A stretch of 63,976 nt of DNA, the filler included, from Reticulomyxa filosa (lineage: Eukaryota; Protista; Foraminifera): the NCBI GenBank assembly GCA_000512085.1. It is 20 parts of 20 records of this genome, joined end to end, with 100 filler letters (N's around TTAATTAATTAA, not from the genome) between each part and the next. Parts side by side here need not be neighbours in the genome. Positions count along the whole stretch, not along the records: positions 26,825 to 36,504 come from ASPP01023693.1; 19 more parts are not named here. One strand, written 5' to 3'. This document shows, one piece after another, positions 5,001 to 36,604 of the stretch. The position numbers were made by a program, and so were the translations under genes. The notes under the pieces were generated by a model, which was not told where the DNA came from, ran no database searches, and saw only the letters and a program-made list of their open reading frames with translations. Numbering within the stretch: position 1 is the first letter of the stretch; every line of letters starts with the position of its first letter.

Positions 5001-5542
5001 ATTTGTTGCTAGGATTTAATAATTGACAAAAGGAGAGAAAATTCAGTTGATTTTTTCCACTTTTTTCAAATTTTTTTAAAAAGCGTGCATATTGCTCGAT
5101 AATTACGTAAATGATTAACCAGGAAGAAGATTGTGCAATTTTTTTTGAAACTACAATCGAGACCCAAAAAAGTTAATAATTACGGCAATATTTTATTTGC
5201 TATACTTAAAAAAAAGAGCGGAAAACAAGTAAACCTTTCAGAGACAATCGATAGAATACAATGCGTTTATGTAATGATACGAGAATATGTATTAGTTTAC
5301 ATAAGAGATTTTTTTATTGCAAATTGGTGGTTGAGAAGTTAAAATTTACTTTTTAAAAAATGTTTTTTTTGTTTTCGTACATGAAATATGTAAGCAAAAA
5401 AAGCTTTTGATCCAAGTGAATGAATGGATTATGTGGAGAGCGAGCAACACGGTGACGAAATATTTCCAAGAAGTTGATAGCAACAATTACAGACATATGC
5501 AACTAACTTTAGTGAATGGTATGCTTTCAAAAGCAAAAAATT

Positions 5543-8151
5543 TCACTCGATTTTGGCAATGTCGTAAATGTCATTGAATCCCCACGAGTACATGTTGACA
5601 TGATCTGTTTTGTCCCAGCGGACTTTGGCCAAGATGCCGGAGATTTCAAGTACGAACTGCAAGACAGCAACAGTGCCTTGTGCGCCATCACCACCGTCCT
5701 CATCTCCATATTTTTGTTGATCCCAAAAGAAGGAGCGTTGGACGCGATCTCCCACGCGAATGCGAGTCGACTCGTGATTGAGCAATTGTCCCCGACGAGA
5801 AAACACGACATCCATGATCCCATTGTAGTTAAAGCGAAAGCCATGGCGACTGCTCCATTGTGTGTATACTTTGTCTCCGCGAATTTGTTGAGGTTGAACG
5901 CGAGCAGGGTCCCATTGCTCCACGCGCAAAACCACGCCTGATTCTTCCGAGTAGTCTCCACTAGGAGGACTTTTGAACGCGGGTCCCTTTGTCACTTTGT
6001 CATCAATAATCAAGTACTGACCTTCTTTCAAGCCCACTTGTTGAATCACACTCAAATCATATGCTTCTTCAATCCCCCAACGATATCTCGGCAAAGGCTG
6101 TGATAGCAGTTCATCAAAGTCGGGTTCTTCCCAAATGCTATTCTCGATTGCGTCCGGGCTATTGTCATTAGTCTTTGCGATTTCGCGAAGCGTGTAATGA
6201 GGATCTATTGTAACGTTTTGACACATTTGCGTGTATTGTTGTGTTTTTTCTTTTTCTTTTTCTTTTTCTTCTTCTTTTGGCTTTTCTTTTTCCTTTTCCT
6301 TTTGTCTCTTTGCCAATCTTTCTTTGTATTCTGTCGCCACTTTCAGCCAATGGTCTTTGTCTTTGTCCCAAAGCACACCCACGCGAATTCCGTTTGCAAA
6401 TGGAGCCGGTGACGCATACAATTCGATGACGGTGCCATAACTTTGAGTGGTATTGCCATCTTGTCTATTTTGCATTAATCAAAAAAACGTTTGAACTAGA
6501 CATAGGCATTATAAAAAGCATTAACAAAACTTTCCCCATCGCCAATTGGGTTTGTCTCGCTTGACCTTGTCCCCAACCGAAATGCAGCGTAAAGTCTGAG
6601 CATTGTCGGAAGGACGTGTATATCGGGCGCACTTTTCGACGACGATAAGATCAAAGGCTCCTCGATATCCGAAGCGATAGTTGCCATAGGCACCAATGTC
6701 CCACGATACGACAGCCTCGGTCATCACGTTGGAGGGGTCCTGCGGATGCCATTGTCGCAACGCGCGTACGGTGCCGGCTATACCATCTTTGCCGTCTTGA
6801 TTGCCCCACTTCCAATCCGGGCCTCTTATCACACGATCGCCGATGAATATCATCGTGTCGTGCGCATACTCTTGCACCACTCTATCTTTGTCGCCGTGAT
6901 GACGAAGAACACTACGCACGTTGCGGAGTTGGTCGTCATAGCCCATTGCAGACAATTGCGACAGTGTCTCGCCAAAGCGCTTCCGACACATGTCCACTCT
7001 CTCTTCCGTCAGTTCGTCATGCAAGTCTATTTTTGGTAAATACTTTTCGTCCATGCCTATGTGCTTGGCCAGAGCACGAGGGCCATTTTTCGGAGGATAC
7101 ATAATACGACCTGACCCCTCTATTATATTCCATTTCATATTCATATAGCACATTTATTTACTTTCAAAAAAAAAAAAAAAGTGTGTTGGAAGAACAAAAA
7201 AAATGTAACACACTTTTTCTAAACCGATTGGACATGTTCTCCATCGATGGAGGAGGATGTGTATTGAATGGTATAGGATCCGCGGACTTGGCATATTCCA
7301 TAATCTCTTCCTCTACAATTGTTGCAATGGAGGATTGTGACAATTGTGACACTTCCACTTTCTTTGCATTTGCAATATTATCACTGCTCTTCTCTTCTTT
7401 TTCTTCTTGTCCCTTTTCGGACTGGACTTCTTTCTTCTTCTCCTCCTCCTCCTCTTTTTCTTCTTCTTTCTCTTTCTCTTCCTCTTCCTTCTCTTTGCTC
7501 TTCTCCTTTTGTTGCTGCTCCGCCGAGGACTTAATGACTGTCGATTGTGCCTGAGCCGATATGCCATGATCCTCACGTGCTGCAACGTTCTCAGAAAGGA
7601 CTGACGCGGAGGAACCGTCTCTCGCTACCACGCTTGAAGACGGGTATTCTGCAAATGGGACCGTGGGGATATCGTAATTGCCCCAGCCCACAAACGGTAC
7701 ATCTGGAGCTGCCATGATATCATCAAGAGGAGCAGAGCCGCCTTCGATCTCTGCTGGGGCATTGTCCCAATCCGCTTCTTCAAATTTCTAGGAACATACA
7801 ACATTATACACATACATGCATATAGATAAGTAATAACAAAAAATGAGGAACGTCTCTCTGGAGTTTGCATATTTAAACTTTCATCCTTTCTTTTGCAGCT
7901 GCTGCTATTGCATCTGCGTCTCTGGATTGAACTCCAATTTTCATTAAAAACTCTTTTTCTGCAAACCGATGAAAATCCTTTCCTGTTATGTTTTCTTGTT
8001 TTATTCGAAACGTATAATTCTTGAAGATTTGATCATTCAAGAGCAATAACCAATCACAGATCTCTTCGTTAGTCCAGTCCATGTATCTCTCATGAGCTGG
8101 CCAGCTATCGACCCACTGAACCGGCTTGTCGTTACTCTTCATTTTGAACAT
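5543..8151 (-). CDS. Multi-exon protein: SAM domain, acidic linker, UBA-like domain, four MIB/HERC2 repeats
   Basis: SAM: WTNEEICDWLLLL..FRIKQENITGKDF..LMKIGV. UBA: LSQLSAMGYDDQLRNVRSVLRHHGDKDRVVQEY. MIB/HERC2: IGDRVIRGPDWKWGNQDGKDGIAGTV..VVSWD..YRFGYRGAFDL plus three further repeats. Four ORFs are joined by plausible GT-AG introns; a splice at ~6530/6465 gives NWRWGKQDG. Confidence 0.8.
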
Positions 8152-26520: not shown

Positions 26521-27055
26521 GCCACTCCTATTTCATCCTTCCTTCTTTCCTTCCCTTCACTACTTACCCCTTTTACATCCTATGTATACGTATGTAATGT
26601 ATGTGGGGTGTGTGTGTGAAGGCGGGAAGCGGGAGGAAAGTATATGACTTGGCATTGTTGATGATCGGGCTTTGTTTTGTTTTTTTTTTTGCTTTTCTTT
26701 CACAAATCATTTTTAATTTATTTCNNNNNNNNNNNNNNNNNNNNNNNNNNNNNNNNNNNNNNNNNNNNTTAATTAATTAANNNNNNNNNNNNNNNNNNNN
26801 NNNNNNNNNNNNNNNNNNNNNNNNGTAGAAAAAGGGGGTTAAAAAACCTATATAAATTTGCTGACTAGACTTTTTTAAAAAAAGAGGGGGCATAAAATAC
26901 CTTCTCTTTTCTCTTCCCCTCCTCCTCCTCTCCCTGTTTTTTTTCTAAACTTTGTGTACATTTCGTGAAAGTTTTGGGTTGATGTTTGTGTCGTTTTTTT
27001 TTTTTTCCAAACCTCCCCTTTATCCCCCCCCCCCCCCCAAAAAAAAAAATGGTAA

Positions 27056-30000
27056 GGTATTGGGAGTACTACAGAAACGTGTGATGGAGAAAACAGAAGC
27101 GGTAGACTCGATGATAAATTATGCATACCAATTTTACAGCCACGACGAACTAAATAAACTGGCGGCATACTACGAAAACCCGACAATAATCCACATAATA
27201 GGCGGACGAGAGAACATAGTGGTCCAACAGAGCGACAAGACATTTATGTGGGGATATCTGAAAAAACTGAGTAACAATAGCGAAGAATTGAAAGAAATGC
27301 TCAACTTGTCAATTGTCAAACTGAGAGCCGTCACCGGCATTGTCTACATGTTACCCAAACTGGCCGAAATTTCATTGCTGGCCTTAATATTTATGTTTAC
27401 ACAATGGATTAATTATGTTACGTTTCTTTATGCATCAACACACATCATTCCAATTTTTTTTTTTTTTTTGATTGGTTGTCAATTTGTTCCAACATTAAAA
27501 AAAAAATGTACATTGAAATAACAGAATCGAGTGCCAGATGACGAATTCATTGACAAGGCCAATACAGTATTGGAAAAGTTCTATCTCTGGCCCATGCCCT
27601 ATGGCACATCGGCACGTGATTTGCTTGTGAGATTGAAGAAAGAGCGAATCGCTCCGGGATTGTCGATGCTACAAAGAATATGGCGTGAATCCCATATGCC
27701 AGAAATAGTTACCGAAGAAATGGGCTCTTTTCGGCCCCTCTACTACTTGTTGGATAGTCGTGACTCCAAAGCCTTAGTAATGGCCAATCTAATGTTCATC
27801 GAACCTACCATCAACTGGGGCGACGGCTACAAAATCCAAGCAAGCTTGTCGCCCCGTCTGTGTGCTATTTTATTGCTCAGTTCCTCTTCCTTTTTCTCGT
27901 CAAATATATATATATGCATTCATATATTGATTCTATTTATTTATTGGAGAGAAGAAAAAAAAGGGGGGGAGGGGGGAGAGGAGAAGAAAAAAAAAAATCT
28001 ATATGTGCATGTACACATAATAATCATAATAATATGAAAATGTGTATCTCTTAAAAAAAAAAAAAAAAAAATCAGACGTTGTCCATCACAGTACTGGCAT
28101 ATCACAAACGCTGGTGAAATGCATTCGTAAACTAAAAGACAATGAGGCTATGACATTTTACAAACAAGTGATGGACGCATTCTTGGAATCGACTAAATGT
28201 AACACCCCAGCCGAGGCCAAAGAGTCCCGCCGAAAGGCATTTGCAATTTTGGCTAATGAACTAATTGCTCGTGTCAAAGACAGAACAGAAGAAGTTACTC
28301 ATCAAACAAAACAAAATAAAAAAAATAAAAAAAAAAGTTAATCGCAAAAGATTGACCCACAAAATATATCTCTCAAAAAAAAAAAAAATAAAAAAAAAAA
28401 GAATGAGAAACTGCAAGACATACCAGAAGATTTTCGCCCTCAATTGCCTGTGTATAATCACACGGGCCTGATATGTGATTTGGTACAAGAAGAATGGCCC
28501 AAAAAAGGTCAAATTGCTTGTGGTGATGCTGTTTATCCTTTTAATGAAGTACTGGTGAAAATGCGGAACATTTTGCTTCAGTACTCGGAACTTTCATTGG
28601 AAAAAGACCCGATTACCTTGAGATTCGCCATTGCCGGCAGTGATCGCATCTTAAACTCCGTTTGCTGGGCTTATGCTGCTTTGTCTCGCCATTACTCAGC
28701 CTTAATATCTCAATTCAATTTGGAATTTTTTGTTATACCTTTCTCGAAAAATCATTACACGGAATGGCTTGCCAGAATGGATCCTTGGTACAAGTTAAGT
28801 TTCAATCCAAAAAGAGTTTTTGTTTGTTTTACATCGAAGCGCAATGACAACAACGACAATATATGTGTATAATTTGCACATGCACAAACAGCCGTCATAT
28901 TTATATCCCCTTTCAATCTCCGCTCTTTTTATGCCCATCTATTCATCCAACTACTCGTCCAAAGAAAGAACCTACCGGAAAAATAGTTGGGTGGCAGACA
29001 GAGGGAACAGAAAAGATTGGGTGTGATTGTTGTGTCTTTTATATAAACAAAGGCAACCAATCACGATTATACACTAATGATAGTTGTTTGTTTGTTTTGA
29101 AATATTGGTAAGACATGCGTGGGCCAATTCTATCGTGATATGTGCGCGTCGTATGTCGAAGAGTCACAACATTCCACAAAGCTGATGATTTGGGAGGTCC
29201 ATTGCTGGAACGAAGAGACATTTACAAATACACCGGACCATATCATCCCCTTTTGCCAACGAGTGACATTGGGACGACAGGCCGAAATAGAAGGGCAAAA
29301 CCAAAACGATCACGATGATAGTGACAGTGATGGACCAGATGAAGAGCAAACCGAAGAAAAAAAAGAGGCAGCTGTGCCAGATGCGTTCTCTGATGAATTC
29401 AAAAAAACTGAGACAATTGGGGATGATCTGTCTGGCGAAAATACCGACGGAACACTTACTTACAAAGCCGTTCCAATTACTGTCACGGTATGATTCGATG
29501 CAAAATAGATTCACACATCAATATATTATATATACGCACAAAAACAATGACAGAACAATTTGTACTGAAATAATTTTGTTTGGTTGACTTTTGTTCATGA
29601 CAGTGGGAGTCAATGGATATGATGGGCCATTTGGCCGAAAAGATAACCCAAAAAGCGCAGCGCTTTGAAGAATTACGAATCGCTGTTTGTCCTATGTTCG
29701 GTGACAAAGGGTTCCCGCCGAGTCCAGGTGAAGAAGGCGTTGCACAAATGCATGCCACCATGGCGAATTCCAAAAAAAAACTAGAAAAGGACTCGAGATT
29801 GTTAGCTTCGGAACCTTCACAAGCTGTACGAGCTGTTACCTTGTCGTCTGACAAAGTTATATTATCTATATTAAATATACACGTATATACATATATATTT
29901 TTTAAATTTTATTTTGCTACACAACAAACGTGAGAATCCTTTTTGTTTGCTTGCTTTTTCTCATATTAATAATCTCAACAACAAATAAATAAAATAAAGC

Positions 30001-30143
30001 CTCAAAATCGATTTTCTATTTTGGTTGATGGGCGCTTCCATGGCTCGTTTGTGCGTATTCGTGTCACGCCAATGTTGGATTTGTTCACAAAGAAACAAGT
30101 TTATATTCCAATTAAAACGTTTTTCCCAGTTGCGTCCAACTGA
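27056..30143 (+). CDS. PI3K-gamma regulatory subunit p101/p87 (PIK3R5/PIK3R6)-like protein, multi-exon, probably 5' partial
   Basis: The spliced product contains VPDDEFIDKANTVLEKFYLWPMPYGTSARDLLVRLKKERIAPGLS, NILLQYSEL..TLRFAIAGSDRI, FNLEFFVIP..LARMDPWYNR, DMCASY..PFCQRVTLG, KAVPITVT and FSILVDG..SFVRIRVTP..IPIKTFF*. These are colinear with the conserved blocks of p101 as recalled. Introns checked: 27417-27524, 28794-28891, 29856-29999. Stop at 30141-30143. Confidence 0.75.
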
Positions 30144-30643
30144 TTATATCTCATTTGTTCGCCGAAAGAGCCATTTTGATTGATTTGTTTTTGTCACTTT
30201 TTGAAGTGTCGATCTTTTGTTGTTCATTGCTGTATAATAGTGAAAGCGACCTTTTTTTTTGCAAAATTATCTTATGATGTCTGGAGACATTAATGTTGTT
30301 TTTGTTACAAATTGAGAAGAGAACCGGTTTTTGCTTCAAATCTATACTATATTCAAGTGAAATTGTATCGTTTGTCAAATAAATCTTTGCTCTTTTGTAA
30401 AATTATTCAAACACGTGTTTTGTATAAGCGAAAAATTTATTGCTTGAAAAACTCCGGTTGGAATTGTTGAGGGGAAAGCTGTGCAAAAAAAGTAAATTCA
30501 TTCGTCTACAGTTCTGCTAGAGTTATTATATTCATCCAAAAAAAAGTAAAATTTGTTTGGTTGTTAATATTGCGATGATATGTTAATTTTATGAATTTTT
30601 GCTTGTGCGTTTGAAACAACAATATCGTGTGATTTAAAGCTGC

Positions 30644-32213
30644 CTAATGTTTGGCTTGCTTCAAATTGGACATAATTCGTTCGATTTTTAGTTCCAATTC
30701 TTTCTTACGATCATCAGAAGGTGGGTGTGTAAGCATAAACGTTGGAAGATTGATTTCTTTATTTTCGATATTAGCTAGTTTCTCCATTGTGCGTACCAAC
30801 GCAGATGGGTCATATCCTGCACACAACATCAAATAAATGGCAACTTCATCGGCTTCCAATTCCATTTTCCGTTGCATCGGCAATTGTCCACCATACAAAA
30901 CCATTTTTCCCAAAATGGAATCGAGTCCACCAGACAAATCAATTCCAAGCGCAAACATGATAGCGAAGACTAAAAATTGCCAACCCAGCGAGCGCTGCCA
31001 CCCTTCTACAACATGGCGACAAATTACATGTGCAATTTCATGACACAATACAGCTGCGCAGTCTTCATCTTTTTCCACGAGTTTGTCTATCAATCCTTTA
31101 TGAAGGAGGGAGGACAGAAATAAGAAAAATGAATTTCTTTTTACAATTAAAAAAAAAAAATATATATATATATGTACATGTATATGTATATAATAAACAT
31201 ACATATATCGTTTTTTTAGTTTGAGAAGCAAACCTGTAGATAAGACAATTTTGCCACCAGGCGTGCTAAAACCAAGCACATTTTCTAAGTCATTGACGAT
31301 GTAACATTCCCAATCAAAGTGTTGACAGTGGCGTAATTTTTCAACAGAAGGGGAGATTTGCTTGATCAATGTTTGTCTGCTTTCTTGGGCATTGGCAGGA
31401 GGAGCATACTTTAGTGATGTGGAATAGACGAGTTTTTTCTGTCTTTGGTCGAGGAATTTGCTGTTGACCAGATTGTTGGATTGCAGTAAATGGACAAATA
31501 AATTGTCTACGTACAAGTATCGTTCATCTTCTTCACTATTCAAAATTTTCGGGCCTCCCAAAAGTTCGGTTGGTTTTGGAAGGTTACGAGATTTAGTTAG
31601 CAAATTTTTCCACTTTTTTTTTTGCTTGTTTTGTTTTGATCTTGATCTTTGTCTTTGTCTTTGACTGTTTCTTCTGGTTGATCTTTTTTTGTTTGATCTT
31701 CACTCTTGTCCTCTTTTTTTTTGGTGTGATCACATTTATGCCATACGTCTGGATTAATGAAAGCGTGATGGCATACGAGGCTATATTCTTATCCAATGAC
31801 CATGGCAAAAACAACATCCTCTTTCGGTGAGTGTACATCACTGAAAAATCTCCAAAACGTATGATTGCGTATGTTGGCAATAACACCACTAAAGACAGAA
31901 GAAATATTAATACACGCTCGATCCATATTGTGTTTTTGAATGAATGTTTTGGGGCTGTCCGATAAATGCGATGCGAAGGGTCCGGACTCCCTACTATATA
32001 ATATTCGGATCGCTTTGCTGGATCTTTTTGAGACGAACAGTAATTACGCTGCCATCTATTGTAACTCAGTGCATATCTTGATGAATTCCATACAAACGGT
32101 ATTGATCCAAATTTTCTCATTACACAGAAACCTTTTTGGACCTCCCTTTTCGAGAAATTGACGGGATTAGCACATATCATCACCATTTGATGTGAAAGAC
32201 CTCGACGAAACAT
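30644..32213 (-). CDS. OMA1: OMA1-like mitochondrial M48 zinc metallopeptidase
   Basis: FDWECYIVND..GFSTPGGKIVLSTGLL, AAVLCHEIAHVICRH (HExxH), RKMELEADEVA..AGYDP, FMLTHPPSDDR. Basic N-terminus resembles a mitochondrial presequence. One intron (~31210-31098) and probable homopolymer frameshifts at ~31615-31720. Confidence 0.85.
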
Positions 32214-33427
32214 CTTCCTCCCGTAAAAATCGAGCAGCGAAAATTATTTCTTTTTAGTTGTTATGACAGTTGAAATTTTTAAAAATTATATGCAAAGGTT
32301 TTCGACATCACTAAAATAAGTGTTAACTTCTACCTTGCACACCACTACCAAGGAATGAAAAAAGAAGTTAATCATATGTTTTATTGTCTATCTCATTTTA
32401 ACAGCATATATATTACAATTGTTTTGATTTATTGTTACACATCGCATCAACCAATTATTGCTGCTTTTCACGAAATTGCTAGACAAAAATGATCAAAAAA
32501 GAATAAACAAAATAATTAATTTTTAATCTTCCAATAACAACATCTCCAGTTCAATATATTTTTATAATTCTTTGGGGTTCAAGAGACACCCCGAAAGATG
32601 TGAACTATGTACGTAATTTCGGAATATTGAATGACCAAAAACGTTTGAAATAAAATTTAAAAATGTACAAGTTTTATGAACTTTGAAAATATGTACGTTC
32701 TTCAAACTATTGTGTTCGTAAACGCTGGTTTTACAAAAAGGAGACACGTTAGTGATTTTTTTATTTTGTCGTCTTTGTTTTGAAAAAAATAAGTCAAAAA
32801 ACTGTCAAAACGACAAAGCTTATTACAATACAAAAAGTGCACTCATAGTGTCCCTTTGTTTAAAAACTTAACTTTCTTTTGTGCCAACAAATATGTCTTT
32901 TTGATTTTTGTTAGTTTGTTTTAAATGCACTTTGAACTTTATGTTTTGTAAAAAAGTAAATTTAAAATGTACATTATTACTTTTTTTAATGATTAACTAA
33001 ATTTATATCTGAAATTTGATGAATCAACACATTATGACACAGCACAAATCAAATTCTTTTATGTTTTTTTATCTGTTGACACACTTAAAAAAAAGATTAA
33101 CACTCATCGAGAAATAATTGCTGTTTTCTTGAATATTCTTTGTTGTATTATAAATTACAATAACAAATCTCCAACCTTGAGTTAAAAAGGTTACAGCGAT
33201 GAATTAACAAAGTACTGTATTTTTTGAAGACGTTCTCCTTATAATATAACTTTTTCAAGTTTACTGTTTTTCATCTTTAAAATGGAAAATATTGACAAAA
33301 CACTGATAGTGTCCTTAACGACTACACTGGAGAGTGGCCCCTCCTGAAGTAGTTGGTTCGTTGCAAACTTTTTTTTGGAGATAATAGCTCTCGGTACCAG
33401 GCTTTTTTTGCATATTTCAACACAAAT

Positions 33428-35232
33428 ATGGCAGCAAAACCCGGTTTAGGGGGAAGACCGAAGCCCAAGCCGGCTATGACAAGAATTGTGAGCAAAAAAC
33501 GTTTTTTTTTCTCGGCTAAAAAAAAGTTCAACCAATAATAAAAAAAAACACATCATAGAAAACTGTGTGGATAACTGAAGCAACAAAACCCTTTGAGGAA
33601 GGTAAGTTCTGTAACTGATCTATACGATGTGCGTGTGTACGTACATAAAAAAAGGGGAGGAGAAGACAGAAAAGAAAAGTAGAGATGAGTAAGAACGATA
33701 TGTGTTATGAATGTTTGTTCCAGACTTTACAATCGGACGACAGCTTGGTGAACCAGGACAATTTGGAAAAGCATTCCGTGTAAAAAAAAAATCGGATGGG
33801 AAACAATTTGCAGCAAAGCAGATATCAAAATCCCGGTTTTACCGCTTGGACAAGGATCCAAAGCGACGTCAGGCATTGTTGGCAGCGATGCAAGGAGAAA
33901 TTGACATAATGAAACGGTTGAATCATAAATACATAGTAAATTTGGACAGTGTCTATGAAGACAAGCAAATGCTGTGGATAGTGATGGAAGAGTGCAGAGG
34001 AGGAGAACTCTTTGACAGAATAACTGCACGAAAAAGGTACAATGAGCCAGATGCGGCACGAGTGTTACGCATGATATTAGACGCGTTATTCTATATGCAC
34101 GATCATCACAGAGTAGTGCATTGTGATTTGAAGCCGGATAACATTTTGTTTGTCGATGAAACGGAAGAAAGTGCAATTAAAATTATTGACTTTGGTATGA
34201 GCAAAGTGTTGCCACGTTTGCGATCTTTGCGAGAGTTGTGCGGTACACCGTATTACACAGCACCGGAGATCATTGATGGCAACTATGCCCACGAAGCTGA
34301 TATGTGGTCCGTTGGTGTGATTGCTTTTGTCATGCTGTTCGGCTATCCCCCTTTTTATGTCAACCCAAATCAATACTATGGCAAAGCTGAAGCGGATGCG
34401 ATTTATGATCTGATCCAGAAAGGATTTAGCCCCGTTGTCAAAAAGGGATATGGACCATTTTTTCCAAAGAAATTTCCGACTTCGGACGAAGCCAAAGATT
34501 TTATGGCTCGTTTAATTGAGACAGATCGTGCCAAGCGAATGACCGCAAAAGAGGCCTTGTTACATCCTTGGATCAAATGCAATGGCTTGACGGAGTGGTA
34601 CAAAAAAAAAAACTGGTGAAAAAATTGAAGACACCAAAGAAAACGAGGAAGTGGTCAGCCGTGAGGTCTTTACAGAAATAGCCAAATTTACCAACAATTG
34701 CAACTTCAAAATTGCGGTAATTCAACTCTTTCGCTCACAATTTGAACAAATGCGACCTGCCCACTTTCAAAGTTTAAAAGATATGTTCAAAAAATTGGAC
34801 AAAGATGGCAACGGTACAATATCATATGAAGAGTTTGAAGAGGGTATGCTCCAAATGAAAGATTTGAAAATCAGCAAGCAGCGAATCAAGGAAATGTTTG
34901 GAGAATTGGACGTGGGTGCCACGGGTGAAATACGTTTTGATGAATTGCTGAATGCTGCTGTTCATGATTATTTGGTGTCAAGTGACGAGAGATTATACCA
35001 AGCTTTCCGAGAGTTGGATGACGATGATGATGGAATTATCTTGGTTGAACAATTGAAGACCAAACTCAAAGAGACTGACCCTTATGGACAATATTCAGAA
35101 ATGCTCAAGACGATAGACGATGCCGACTTGGATAAAGATGGAAAAGTCAACTATGAAGAATTTTTGCGCGCTTTGCACCCAGATTTTAATGAACAGCCGG
35201 CATGGTTTTGGGAAGATAAAAAAAAAGTGTAG
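33428..35232 (+). CDS. Calcium-dependent protein kinase (CDPK): kinase domain plus 4 EF-hands
   Basis: Kinase motifs FAAKQI, HCDLKPDN, DFG, CGTPYYTAPE, DMWSVGV. EF-hands DKDGNGTISYEEF, DVGATGEIRFDEL, DDDDDGIILVEQL, DLDKDGKVNYEEF. Two short 5' exons (MAAKPGLGGR.., KTVWITEATKPFEE). Removing one A from the A11 run at 34602-34612 fuses ORFs 33711-34619 and 34651-35232. Confidence 0.92.
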
Positions 35233-36604
35233 CAAAAGTGGTCTGTTGCCCCCACTTTTTTGTCTATATTAAAAAGCTCCTTTTTTTGTTGTGAAATTTT
35301 TTGTCGAGTTGATCAGCCAAAACCTGTCACCACCTATCATCAGACTAATGTTTATTTTGTTTTGCCGACTTTTTTTTCGCTTGTATGCCAATTGTGGTTG
35401 AAAAGTCAATGCCTATAATCAACAACGCATCATCATACATATTCATGCAAACCATTTTTTATCACAATATTATTCCACTTTCAAATATATTGCTACTGAG
35501 CAAATGCAATCTATTCTGGAATGTCTTGTAAATAAGTATAATTATATTAATTTCATTTTTACTTTTTCCTTGTTACCTTTCGTTTGTCGCTACTGAAAAT
35601 AAATTTTGTAAAAAAAGATTACTAAATATTATAACAAAAATTACACTTCATATTAATCATCTTGTGCGTTAGTAATCTTGTTCTTCATGCTTTCGTACGT
35701 AAAACACATCGTATGAATGACCGCCAATTCTAAGTAATATTCTCCGCAACTAATGAGATAAAAAAATTTTATGATTAAAAAAATGAAATTGAAAGTTTGC
35801 CAAAAAGGAAAATACTTGAACATTGTTCGCCATCATTGTTTAAGCTTTGTTAGCGAGACAAAACGGCTTTTTGCCTTGTATTCCTGTTTTTTTGTGACAT
35901 TGTACTTATTTTTGCTTAATTTCGTTTCTTTTAAGTGTATTAATGATTTTTAGCTAGTCTTTTCTAACTACATTCAATATTTTTCAATTAATCTTAAAAT
36001 TATTTTCATTATTATCACTATTATCATTATTATCAATTTTTCAAATAATTCTTTTGATTTTTTTAAAACATAGAAAAAACAAAAATAATAAAATTTAAAT
36101 ATTTTGATTCCTTCAAAAGGAGGGCCGTAGAGGAAATATTCTCAATAGTATTAATTTGGTGTATCTTCCGACAAAACTTATTTGTGAATGATCCATATAG
36201 TTTCATAATAAAATCAGTTTTAAAAAACTAATGTTATACATTAAGTTCATAATGTAACTAATATGACAACATTCTTAATTAGAAAAAAAATTTTTCTTAA
36301 TGTTATGGTGAACAACTGACAAATTATAAAAAAAATATAACATAAATAAAAAGTTCTTTACACAAACTTCTTTTGTTAATTTTTTTTAAAAATTTACTTT
36401 TAAATTAAGTAGTGTGCGAACAATGTTCAATTATTTTCCTTTTGTTGTGATATTACTGTTGATATACGGTAAGATAAAAAAGAAAGTTGACACATAAAAT
36501 GCCANNNNNNNNNNNNNNNNNNNNNNNNNNNNNNNNNNNNNNNNNNNNTTAATTAATTAANNNNNNNNNNNNNNNNNNNNNNNNNNNNNNNNNNNNNNNN
36601 NNNN

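Follow-up and report, generated by a model that had tools for sequence, protein, structure and literature searches.

Gene structure at the locus

The window analysed here is a stretch of 63,976 nt, filler included, from the freshwater foraminifer Reticulomyxa filosa, in which positions 26825–36504 represent one entire contig of 9,680 bp (ASPP01023693.1). At 27057–30143 on the plus strand of this contig lies a gene related to p101 (PIK3R5) and p84/p87 (PIK3R6), the regulatory subunits of class IB phosphoinositide 3-kinase (PI3K). The homology to p101/p84 is firm. The first-pass annotation of the window had placed here a spliced reading frame collinear with p101 in an apparently rhizarian host. 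The host assignment is correct, and the collinearity is borne out by the exon map and by Pfam matches that follow each other in profile order.

The gene consists of eight exons and seven introns, as determined by tblastn of foraminiferal orthologs combined with a check of the reading frames (Table 1). The queries were an Ammonia sp. MMETSP1384 transcript (P0044), MMETSP1385 (P0047), a TARA metagenome sequence (P0002) and a further metagenome sequence (P0001), which gave collinear blocks over 27057–30131. By in-script count, the exons sum to 2190 nt; their 729 codons are free of internal stops and close with TGA. All seven introns are of the GT-AG type and measure 98–196 nt, with a GC content of 18–35% against 39–47% for the exons, and A-rich tracts precede most of the acceptors. 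The spacing of the exon junctions equals that of the orthologs to the residue at E1/E2, E2/E3 and E5/E6, and the E2/E3 junction (LLLN/VVHH) agrees with both the GenBank model and Ammonia. Exon 4 is 58% identical to the metagenome protein P0001. For exon 5, the spacing up to VGQFY, the conserved block that comes next, amounts to exactly 33 residues, the same as in Ammonia.

The gene is already deposited in GenBank as 'hypothetical protein RFI_27324, partial', whose 504 residues are identical to open reading frames of the window, intron read-through included, and a precomputed PF10486 match to this protein already stands in databases. It is therefore an unremarked annotation (unnamed, partial and mis-spliced), not a hidden gene. 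In the deposited model (27084–28872), intron 1 and portions of further introns are kept as coding sequence. The model stops in read-through past exon 4 (...DPWYKLSF...) and lacks exons 5–8, about 290 codons that include the entire C-terminal domain.

The gene had also been called full-length, which holds for one part of it. The span that superposes on p101/p84 (Ammonia residues 144–938) is wholly present in the window gene, but the 5' end is lost at the contig edge. The first in-frame ATG stands at 27084, and the conserved VLGVL lies upstream of this ATG, directly after the AG at 27055–56. By tblastn, Ammonia residues 134–936 align to 27057–30131. Since VLGVL precedes the first ATG, Ammonia residue 134 falls at 27057 and only 232 nt remain before the contig edge, the 5' exons are placed outside the contig. 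In these 232 nt (26825–27056) upstream of exon 1, tblastn gave no match to the first 133 residues of the orthologs. Thus, the gene is cut by the contig edge and misses about 133 N-terminal residues that are conserved in the protist relatives. The R. filosa assembly is highly fragmented (PMC5784254). We notice long homopolymers (C13–14, A11–17, T11–13) at 26900–27050 and just before several acceptor sites. Such runs are typical of the R. filosa genome and are likely to be one reason for breaks and frame errors in the assembly.

The missing N-terminal extension, of about 133–140 residues by the consensus of both alignments, is conserved across the protist family. It is confidently modelled as helical (residues 1–143 in Ammonia P0044, 1–140 in P0017), carries the blocks K..LG, FW and NT..F, and has no counterpart in p101 or p84. 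On the TARA contig L001, a called gene of 158 residues (5513–5989) lies 12 nt upstream of the 807-residue P0002 (6001–8424) on the same strand, and probably represents the N-terminal extension of that protein, split off from it.

Table 1. Features of the R. filosa contig, in window positions.
Feature	Position	Strand	Content and basis
Contig edge	26825–27056		Low-complexity sequence (poly-C, poly-A, poly-T); no recognisable coding sequence
Exon 1	27057–27416	+	N-terminal helical region, preceded by AG at 27055–56; Ammonia P0044 residue 134 at 27057 (tblastn)
Exon 2	27525–27879	+	Helical domain; WPMPY at 27588–27602 (invariant WPxPY turn) and E..PG motif; Pfam, PDB, family alignment
Exon 3	28076–28293	+	Helical region, then start of the alpha/beta domain; tblastn collinearity
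Exon 4	28402–28793	+	Core of the alpha/beta domain, diacylglycerol kinase (DAGK)-like; AGSDRI at 28636–28650, FNLEFFVIP, DPWY at 28780–28791; Pfam, PDB
Exon 5	28892–28985	+	Short linker past DPWY-NRH; tblastn of P0001, P0002, P0044, P0047
Exon 6	29113–29487	+	Start of the C-terminal beta-sandwich (WEVHCW, IPFCQRV); acidic loop ~29293–29454; tblastn
Exon 7	29604–29855	+	C-terminal beta-sandwich; family-conserved P..GD...P.P and EPSQ.V blocks; translation, tblastn, family alignment
Exon 8	30000–30143	+	Final strands (F.ILVDG..G, P.KTFFP), TGA at 30141–30143; translation, family alignment
Introns 1–7	27417–27524, 27880–28075, 28294–28401, 28794–28891, 28986–29112, 29488–29603, 29856–29999	+	GT-AG
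M48/OMA1-like gene	30644–32213	-	Zinc peptidase; Pfam Peptidase_M48 E 4.7e-24, HEIAH motif
CDPK-like gene	33711–35232	+	Protein kinase domain E 5e-67, then four EF-hands E 1e-26

Homology to p101 and p84 in sequence and fold

Homology searches were made with individual exons or with database orthologs, the exons being scored singly. Against the Pfam profile PF10486 (PI3K_1B_p101), the profile that the first-pass annotation had proposed, exon 2 lies above the cut-off (E 4.4e-7; 28.5 bits, cut-off 23; profile 93–144), and exon 4 gives a match collinear with it (E 3.5e-4, 18.9 bits, profile 479–549). No meaningful Pfam match was obtained for the other exons. The orthologs reach 57–61 bits on the same profile. 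The best PDB sequence matches of exons 2 and 4 are p101 chains (7mez_B, 8so9_B), and exon 2 additionally matches p84 (8aj8_B). Exon 2 is the stretch most conserved with p101 and aligns to p101 residues ~100–150.

An exhaustive phmmer search with exon 4 recovered 38 proteins, and the full-length ones among them carry PF10486, mostly over its cut-off. When a family profile of 22 of these proteins was compared with the PDB, p101 was found at E 6.6e-21 (77 bits) over three collinear stretches (48–156, 512–566 and 605–749) and p84 at E 2.9e-6 (29 bits). This protist profile finds nothing beyond p101/p84 in the PDB, where the next match has E 0.49. A profile built from the 13 non-foraminiferal members alone retrieves p101 from the PDB at E 1.2e-15. 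Without exception, the 22 family sequences carry W and P in the WPxPY turn. One candidate, P0004 (phmmer E 1.5e-21, 20 stretches), was discarded as spurious, being a bacterial HYR/Ig-repeat surface protein.

Eight motif pairs between this gene and human PIK3R5 had been listed at the outset. Half of them are reproduced in HMMER alignments, namely the WPxPY block, TLRFAIAGSDRI, FNLEFFVIP and DPWY. No sequence search recovered the remaining four: PAEAK, NILLQYSEL, AVPITV and, at the C-terminus, the FSILVD/IPIKTF block.

The fold agrees with the sequence matches. The AlphaFold2 model of the Ammonia ortholog has a predicted local distance difference test score (pLDDT) of 81 and a predicted template modelling score (pTM) of 0.84, and its top eight Foldseek matches are p84/p101 (E 5e-19 to 6e-13). 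In the ESM Atlas, PIK3R5/6 ranks first both by features and by shape. The three-domain architecture, composed of a helical solenoid, an alpha/beta barrel and, C-terminally, a beta-sandwich, superposes end to end on p101/p84.

Comparison with the two vertebrate proteins revealed differences as well. In p101 (PDB 7MEZ, 8SO9–8SOE), residues 311–512 form a disordered linker that the protist proteins do not have; conversely, p101 is without their N-terminal extension (~140 residues), and its identity to them is ~15–20%. The long linker had been reported as absent from the R. filosa protein. It is indeed absent at the position named, as the TLRF strand of the Ammonia model follows almost immediately on a helix. 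Elsewhere, within the C-terminal domain (~29293–29454), there is a loop that is acidic and probably disordered, and the equivalent Ammonia segment (717–790) has a pLDDT below 50. The profile score of p84 (PDB 8AJ8) is weaker than that of p101 (29 vs 77 bits). By fold score and by the absence of the long p101 linker, the protist proteins are at least as p84-like as p101-like. The vertebrate paralog p84 has its origin in gnathostomes, which makes the foraminiferal gene co-orthologous to p101 and p84, and not to p84 in particular.

Candidate functions of the protein

We take the gene as the ortholog, in R. filosa, of a protist p101/p84 branch (PIK3R5/PIK3R6, PF10486) and propose that it encodes a regulatory or adaptor subunit, a reading to which we give a probability of roughly 0.6. 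The protein would be non-catalytic. Through its N-terminal helical domain it would hold a class I-type PI3K catalytic subunit by the C2 domain and the linkers on either side, and this grip may stabilise the catalytic subunit and position it at the membrane; contacts with the membrane or an activator would be made by the C-terminal sandwich. In p101/p84, the main interface with p110γ is formed by the N-terminal helices, at the α3-4 and α5-6 loops, and p101 residues 25–175 suffice for p110γ binding (PMC8397274, PMC10068899). The similarity between foraminiferal proteins and p101 peaks inside this fragment, at p101 48–156, which contributes 41 of the 77 bits of the family profile, a value for the stretch as a whole. 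The data of Philippon et al. (PMC4617754) include at least two PI3K catalytic homologs from R. filosa. We infer the PI3K adaptor role of the foraminiferal protein on these grounds.

Several observations weigh against this proposal. Identity to p101/p84 is just 14–20% in structural alignments, and the protist family has the extra conserved N-terminal extension of ~140 residues. Splicing and expression of the gene rest on its homology to foraminiferal transcripts. Neither exon 8 nor the Ammonia C-terminal domain gave a match to p101 or another relevant protein in PDB sequence searches, and judging from the model, the C-terminal domain resembles p101 by fold only. Inside the protist family, the C-terminal sandwich is well conserved in the family alignment.

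The same domain bears on the activators. In p101, two helices between β8 and β9 (residues 816–830) bind Gβγ. These helices are not recognisable by sequence in the protist proteins; they are not conserved across the protist family, and none are seen in the P0017 model. Two short helices of the Ammonia model (867–876) may occupy an equivalent place. p84 likewise has no β8-β9 helices, and the feature thus marks p101, not the whole family; p84 is the weakly Gβγ-responsive form. Because the C-terminal domain resembles p101 by fold only, Gβγ coupling of the protist protein is unsupported. For Ras coupling and a phosphatidylinositol trisphosphate (PIP3) module in R. filosa, both raised in the first-pass annotation, we have inference only.

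The alternative that survives best takes the protein as a p101/p84 homolog that is no PI3K adaptor. It would belong to a broader family of pseudo-kinase scaffolds, with p101/p84 and the PACS-1 C-terminal region sharing the DAGK-like fold, and would have another foraminiferal partner, such as one in membrane sorting or in cytoskeletal transport, and the PI3Kγ role would be a vertebrate novelty. We regard this as unlikely, though it deserves serious attention. It is consistent with a C-terminal domain whose sequence is not conserved with p101, with the lack of the N-terminal extension in vertebrates, and with the occurrence of class IB catalytic subunits in opisthokonts only (PMC4617754). Weak Pfam Pacs-1 cross-matches on the same alpha/beta region, and a PACS-1 C-terminal cluster with the same fold (template modelling (TM) score 0.56 by target), also favour a scaffold. 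The similarity within the p110γ-binding fragment is the ground on which we prefer the adaptor reading.

A better match to PACS-1 itself had been named as an outcome that would overturn the p101 assignment. It was not found: PACS-1 (PF10254) scores 11 bits on exon 4 against a cut-off of 25, the homologs reach at most 22 bits, and there is no C2_PACS_N match to the PACS N-terminal cargo-binding region. We reject PACS-1 membership on these sub-cut-off scores and the missing N-terminal region. The C-terminal region of PACS-1/2 has a DAGK-like alpha/beta plus beta-sandwich half in common with the p101-like protein, whereas PACS has its own N-terminal part (a C2-like cargo-binding region) and is without the p101-type helical solenoid with WPxPY. 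We notice that this C-terminal region gives repeated sub-threshold Pfam matches on the AGSDR–DPWY segment, besides the fold shared with p101/p84 (TM 0.56 by target). This suggests a distant common origin of p101/p84 and the PACS-1/2 C-terminal region.

That the protein is an active kinase for small molecules or lipids, from the DAGK/sphingosine kinase/NAD-kinase superfamily, is very improbable. There is no Pfam DAGK_cat or NAD_kinase match at E <0.01, and AGSDRI (28636–28650) is a degenerate form of the GGDG motif: the R. filosa sequence reads AGSDR and VDGR and that of Ammonia AGGNS, which leaves neither the aspartate nor the second glycine conserved. On the same grounds, p101 has been judged catalytically dead (PMC8397274). 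The degenerate motif and the absent catalytic Pfam match lead us to reject this reading. DAGK, sphingosine kinase, YegS and NAD kinase also have no N-terminal solenoid, and their catalytic motifs are degenerate in the p101-like protein. Many protist members retain AGGD and VDGQ (in the alignment columns of window sites 28636–28650 and 30024–30038), which are nearer to the GGDG and DGE/DGQ of DAGK and NAD kinases than vertebrate p101 is. The protist family may record how an ancestral kinase decayed to a scaffold.

Descent of the gene and age of the family

The named relatives of the gene are foraminiferal, comprising Ammonia (taxid 29189), MMETSP1385 and EukProt entries; others come from TARA and further metagenomes. 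Over the mapped exon blocks, the gene is 35–41% identical to the foraminiferal orthologs by tblastn. In a quick maximum-likelihood tree of the protist family, R. filosa is sister to the remaining foraminifera with a support of 100 (Shimodaira–Hasegawa-like approximate likelihood ratio test, SH-aLRT). This branching matches the expectation of vertical descent for a monothalamid relative to rotaliids, and on this evidence the gene was inherited vertically within Foraminifera. The non-foraminiferal sequences of the same tree sit on long branches of 1–3 changes per site. The contigs of the distant homologs derive from TARA, JGI and Logan metagenomes or transcriptomes, plus a copper-mine metagenome. 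Word-based homolog searches with the family alignment and with P0025 returned foraminiferal relatives or the query only.

Two further genes share the contig (Table 1), an M48/OMA1-like peptidase and a calcium-dependent protein kinase (CDPK)-like kinase, in agreement with the neighbours first noted. The M48 gene contains at least one short AT-rich intron near 31100–31210, through which the open reading frame runs as a series of Y/I/H/F, so that the introns of the p101-like gene, which had been called host-type, are of the same short, AT-rich kind as those next to it. The CDPK-like gene consists of two open reading frames in different frames that overlap at an A11 run (34602–34612). This frame change is either an assembly error in homopolymer length or a very short intron.

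Animal contamination of the assembly, or a recent transfer from an animal, could appeal to the earlier description of the family from vertebrates only (PMC4617754) and to the large PF10486 clusters of the ESM Atlas, which are all chordate, but it is hardly credible and we reject it, as had been argued from the start: the gene has seven introns, short and AT-rich as in the M48 gene beside it, shares its contig with protist-type genes, is 35–41% identical to its orthologs in other foraminifera against 14–20% to p101/p84 in structural alignments, and is sister to those orthologs with full support.

Philippon et al. (2015; PMC4617754) dated the class IB regulatory subunits p101/p87 to vertebrates with R. 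filosa in their data set, and used a BLAST cut-off of 1e-30, which would miss the R. filosa gene. Theirs is the only phylogenetic study of these regulatory subunits that turned up in the library searched. The presence of a foraminiferal p101/p84 homolog conflicts with this published origin. Philippon et al. also posed the question of what regulates class IB-type catalytic subunits elsewhere. According to reviews, the class I PI3Ks of Dictyostelium and Entamoeba lack regulatory subunits (PMC6563779). In the library of papers that we searched by text, p101-like proteins outside animals were not mentioned.

The adaptor family is not confined to vertebrates. A conserved, structurally complete homolog in Foraminifera and several uncultured eukaryotes strongly suggests that the family and its fold originated far outside vertebrates. 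The earlier claim that the adaptor is much older than animals is plausible, since diverse non-foraminiferal homologs exist. The foraminiferal protein is also a concrete candidate partner for protist PI3Ks. As a tentative and still doubtful extension, p101/p84-type proteins could be ancient, widespread eukaryotic partners of class I-type PI3Ks. If so, they would be the 'missing' regulatory subunit reported absent in protist surveys, and in Foraminifera they would link heterotrimeric G-protein or Ras input to a PIP3 production that guides reticulopodial motility and feeding. On this view, vertebrate p101 and p84 would derive late from such proteins, in trimmed form, after losing the N-terminal extension of ~140 residues.

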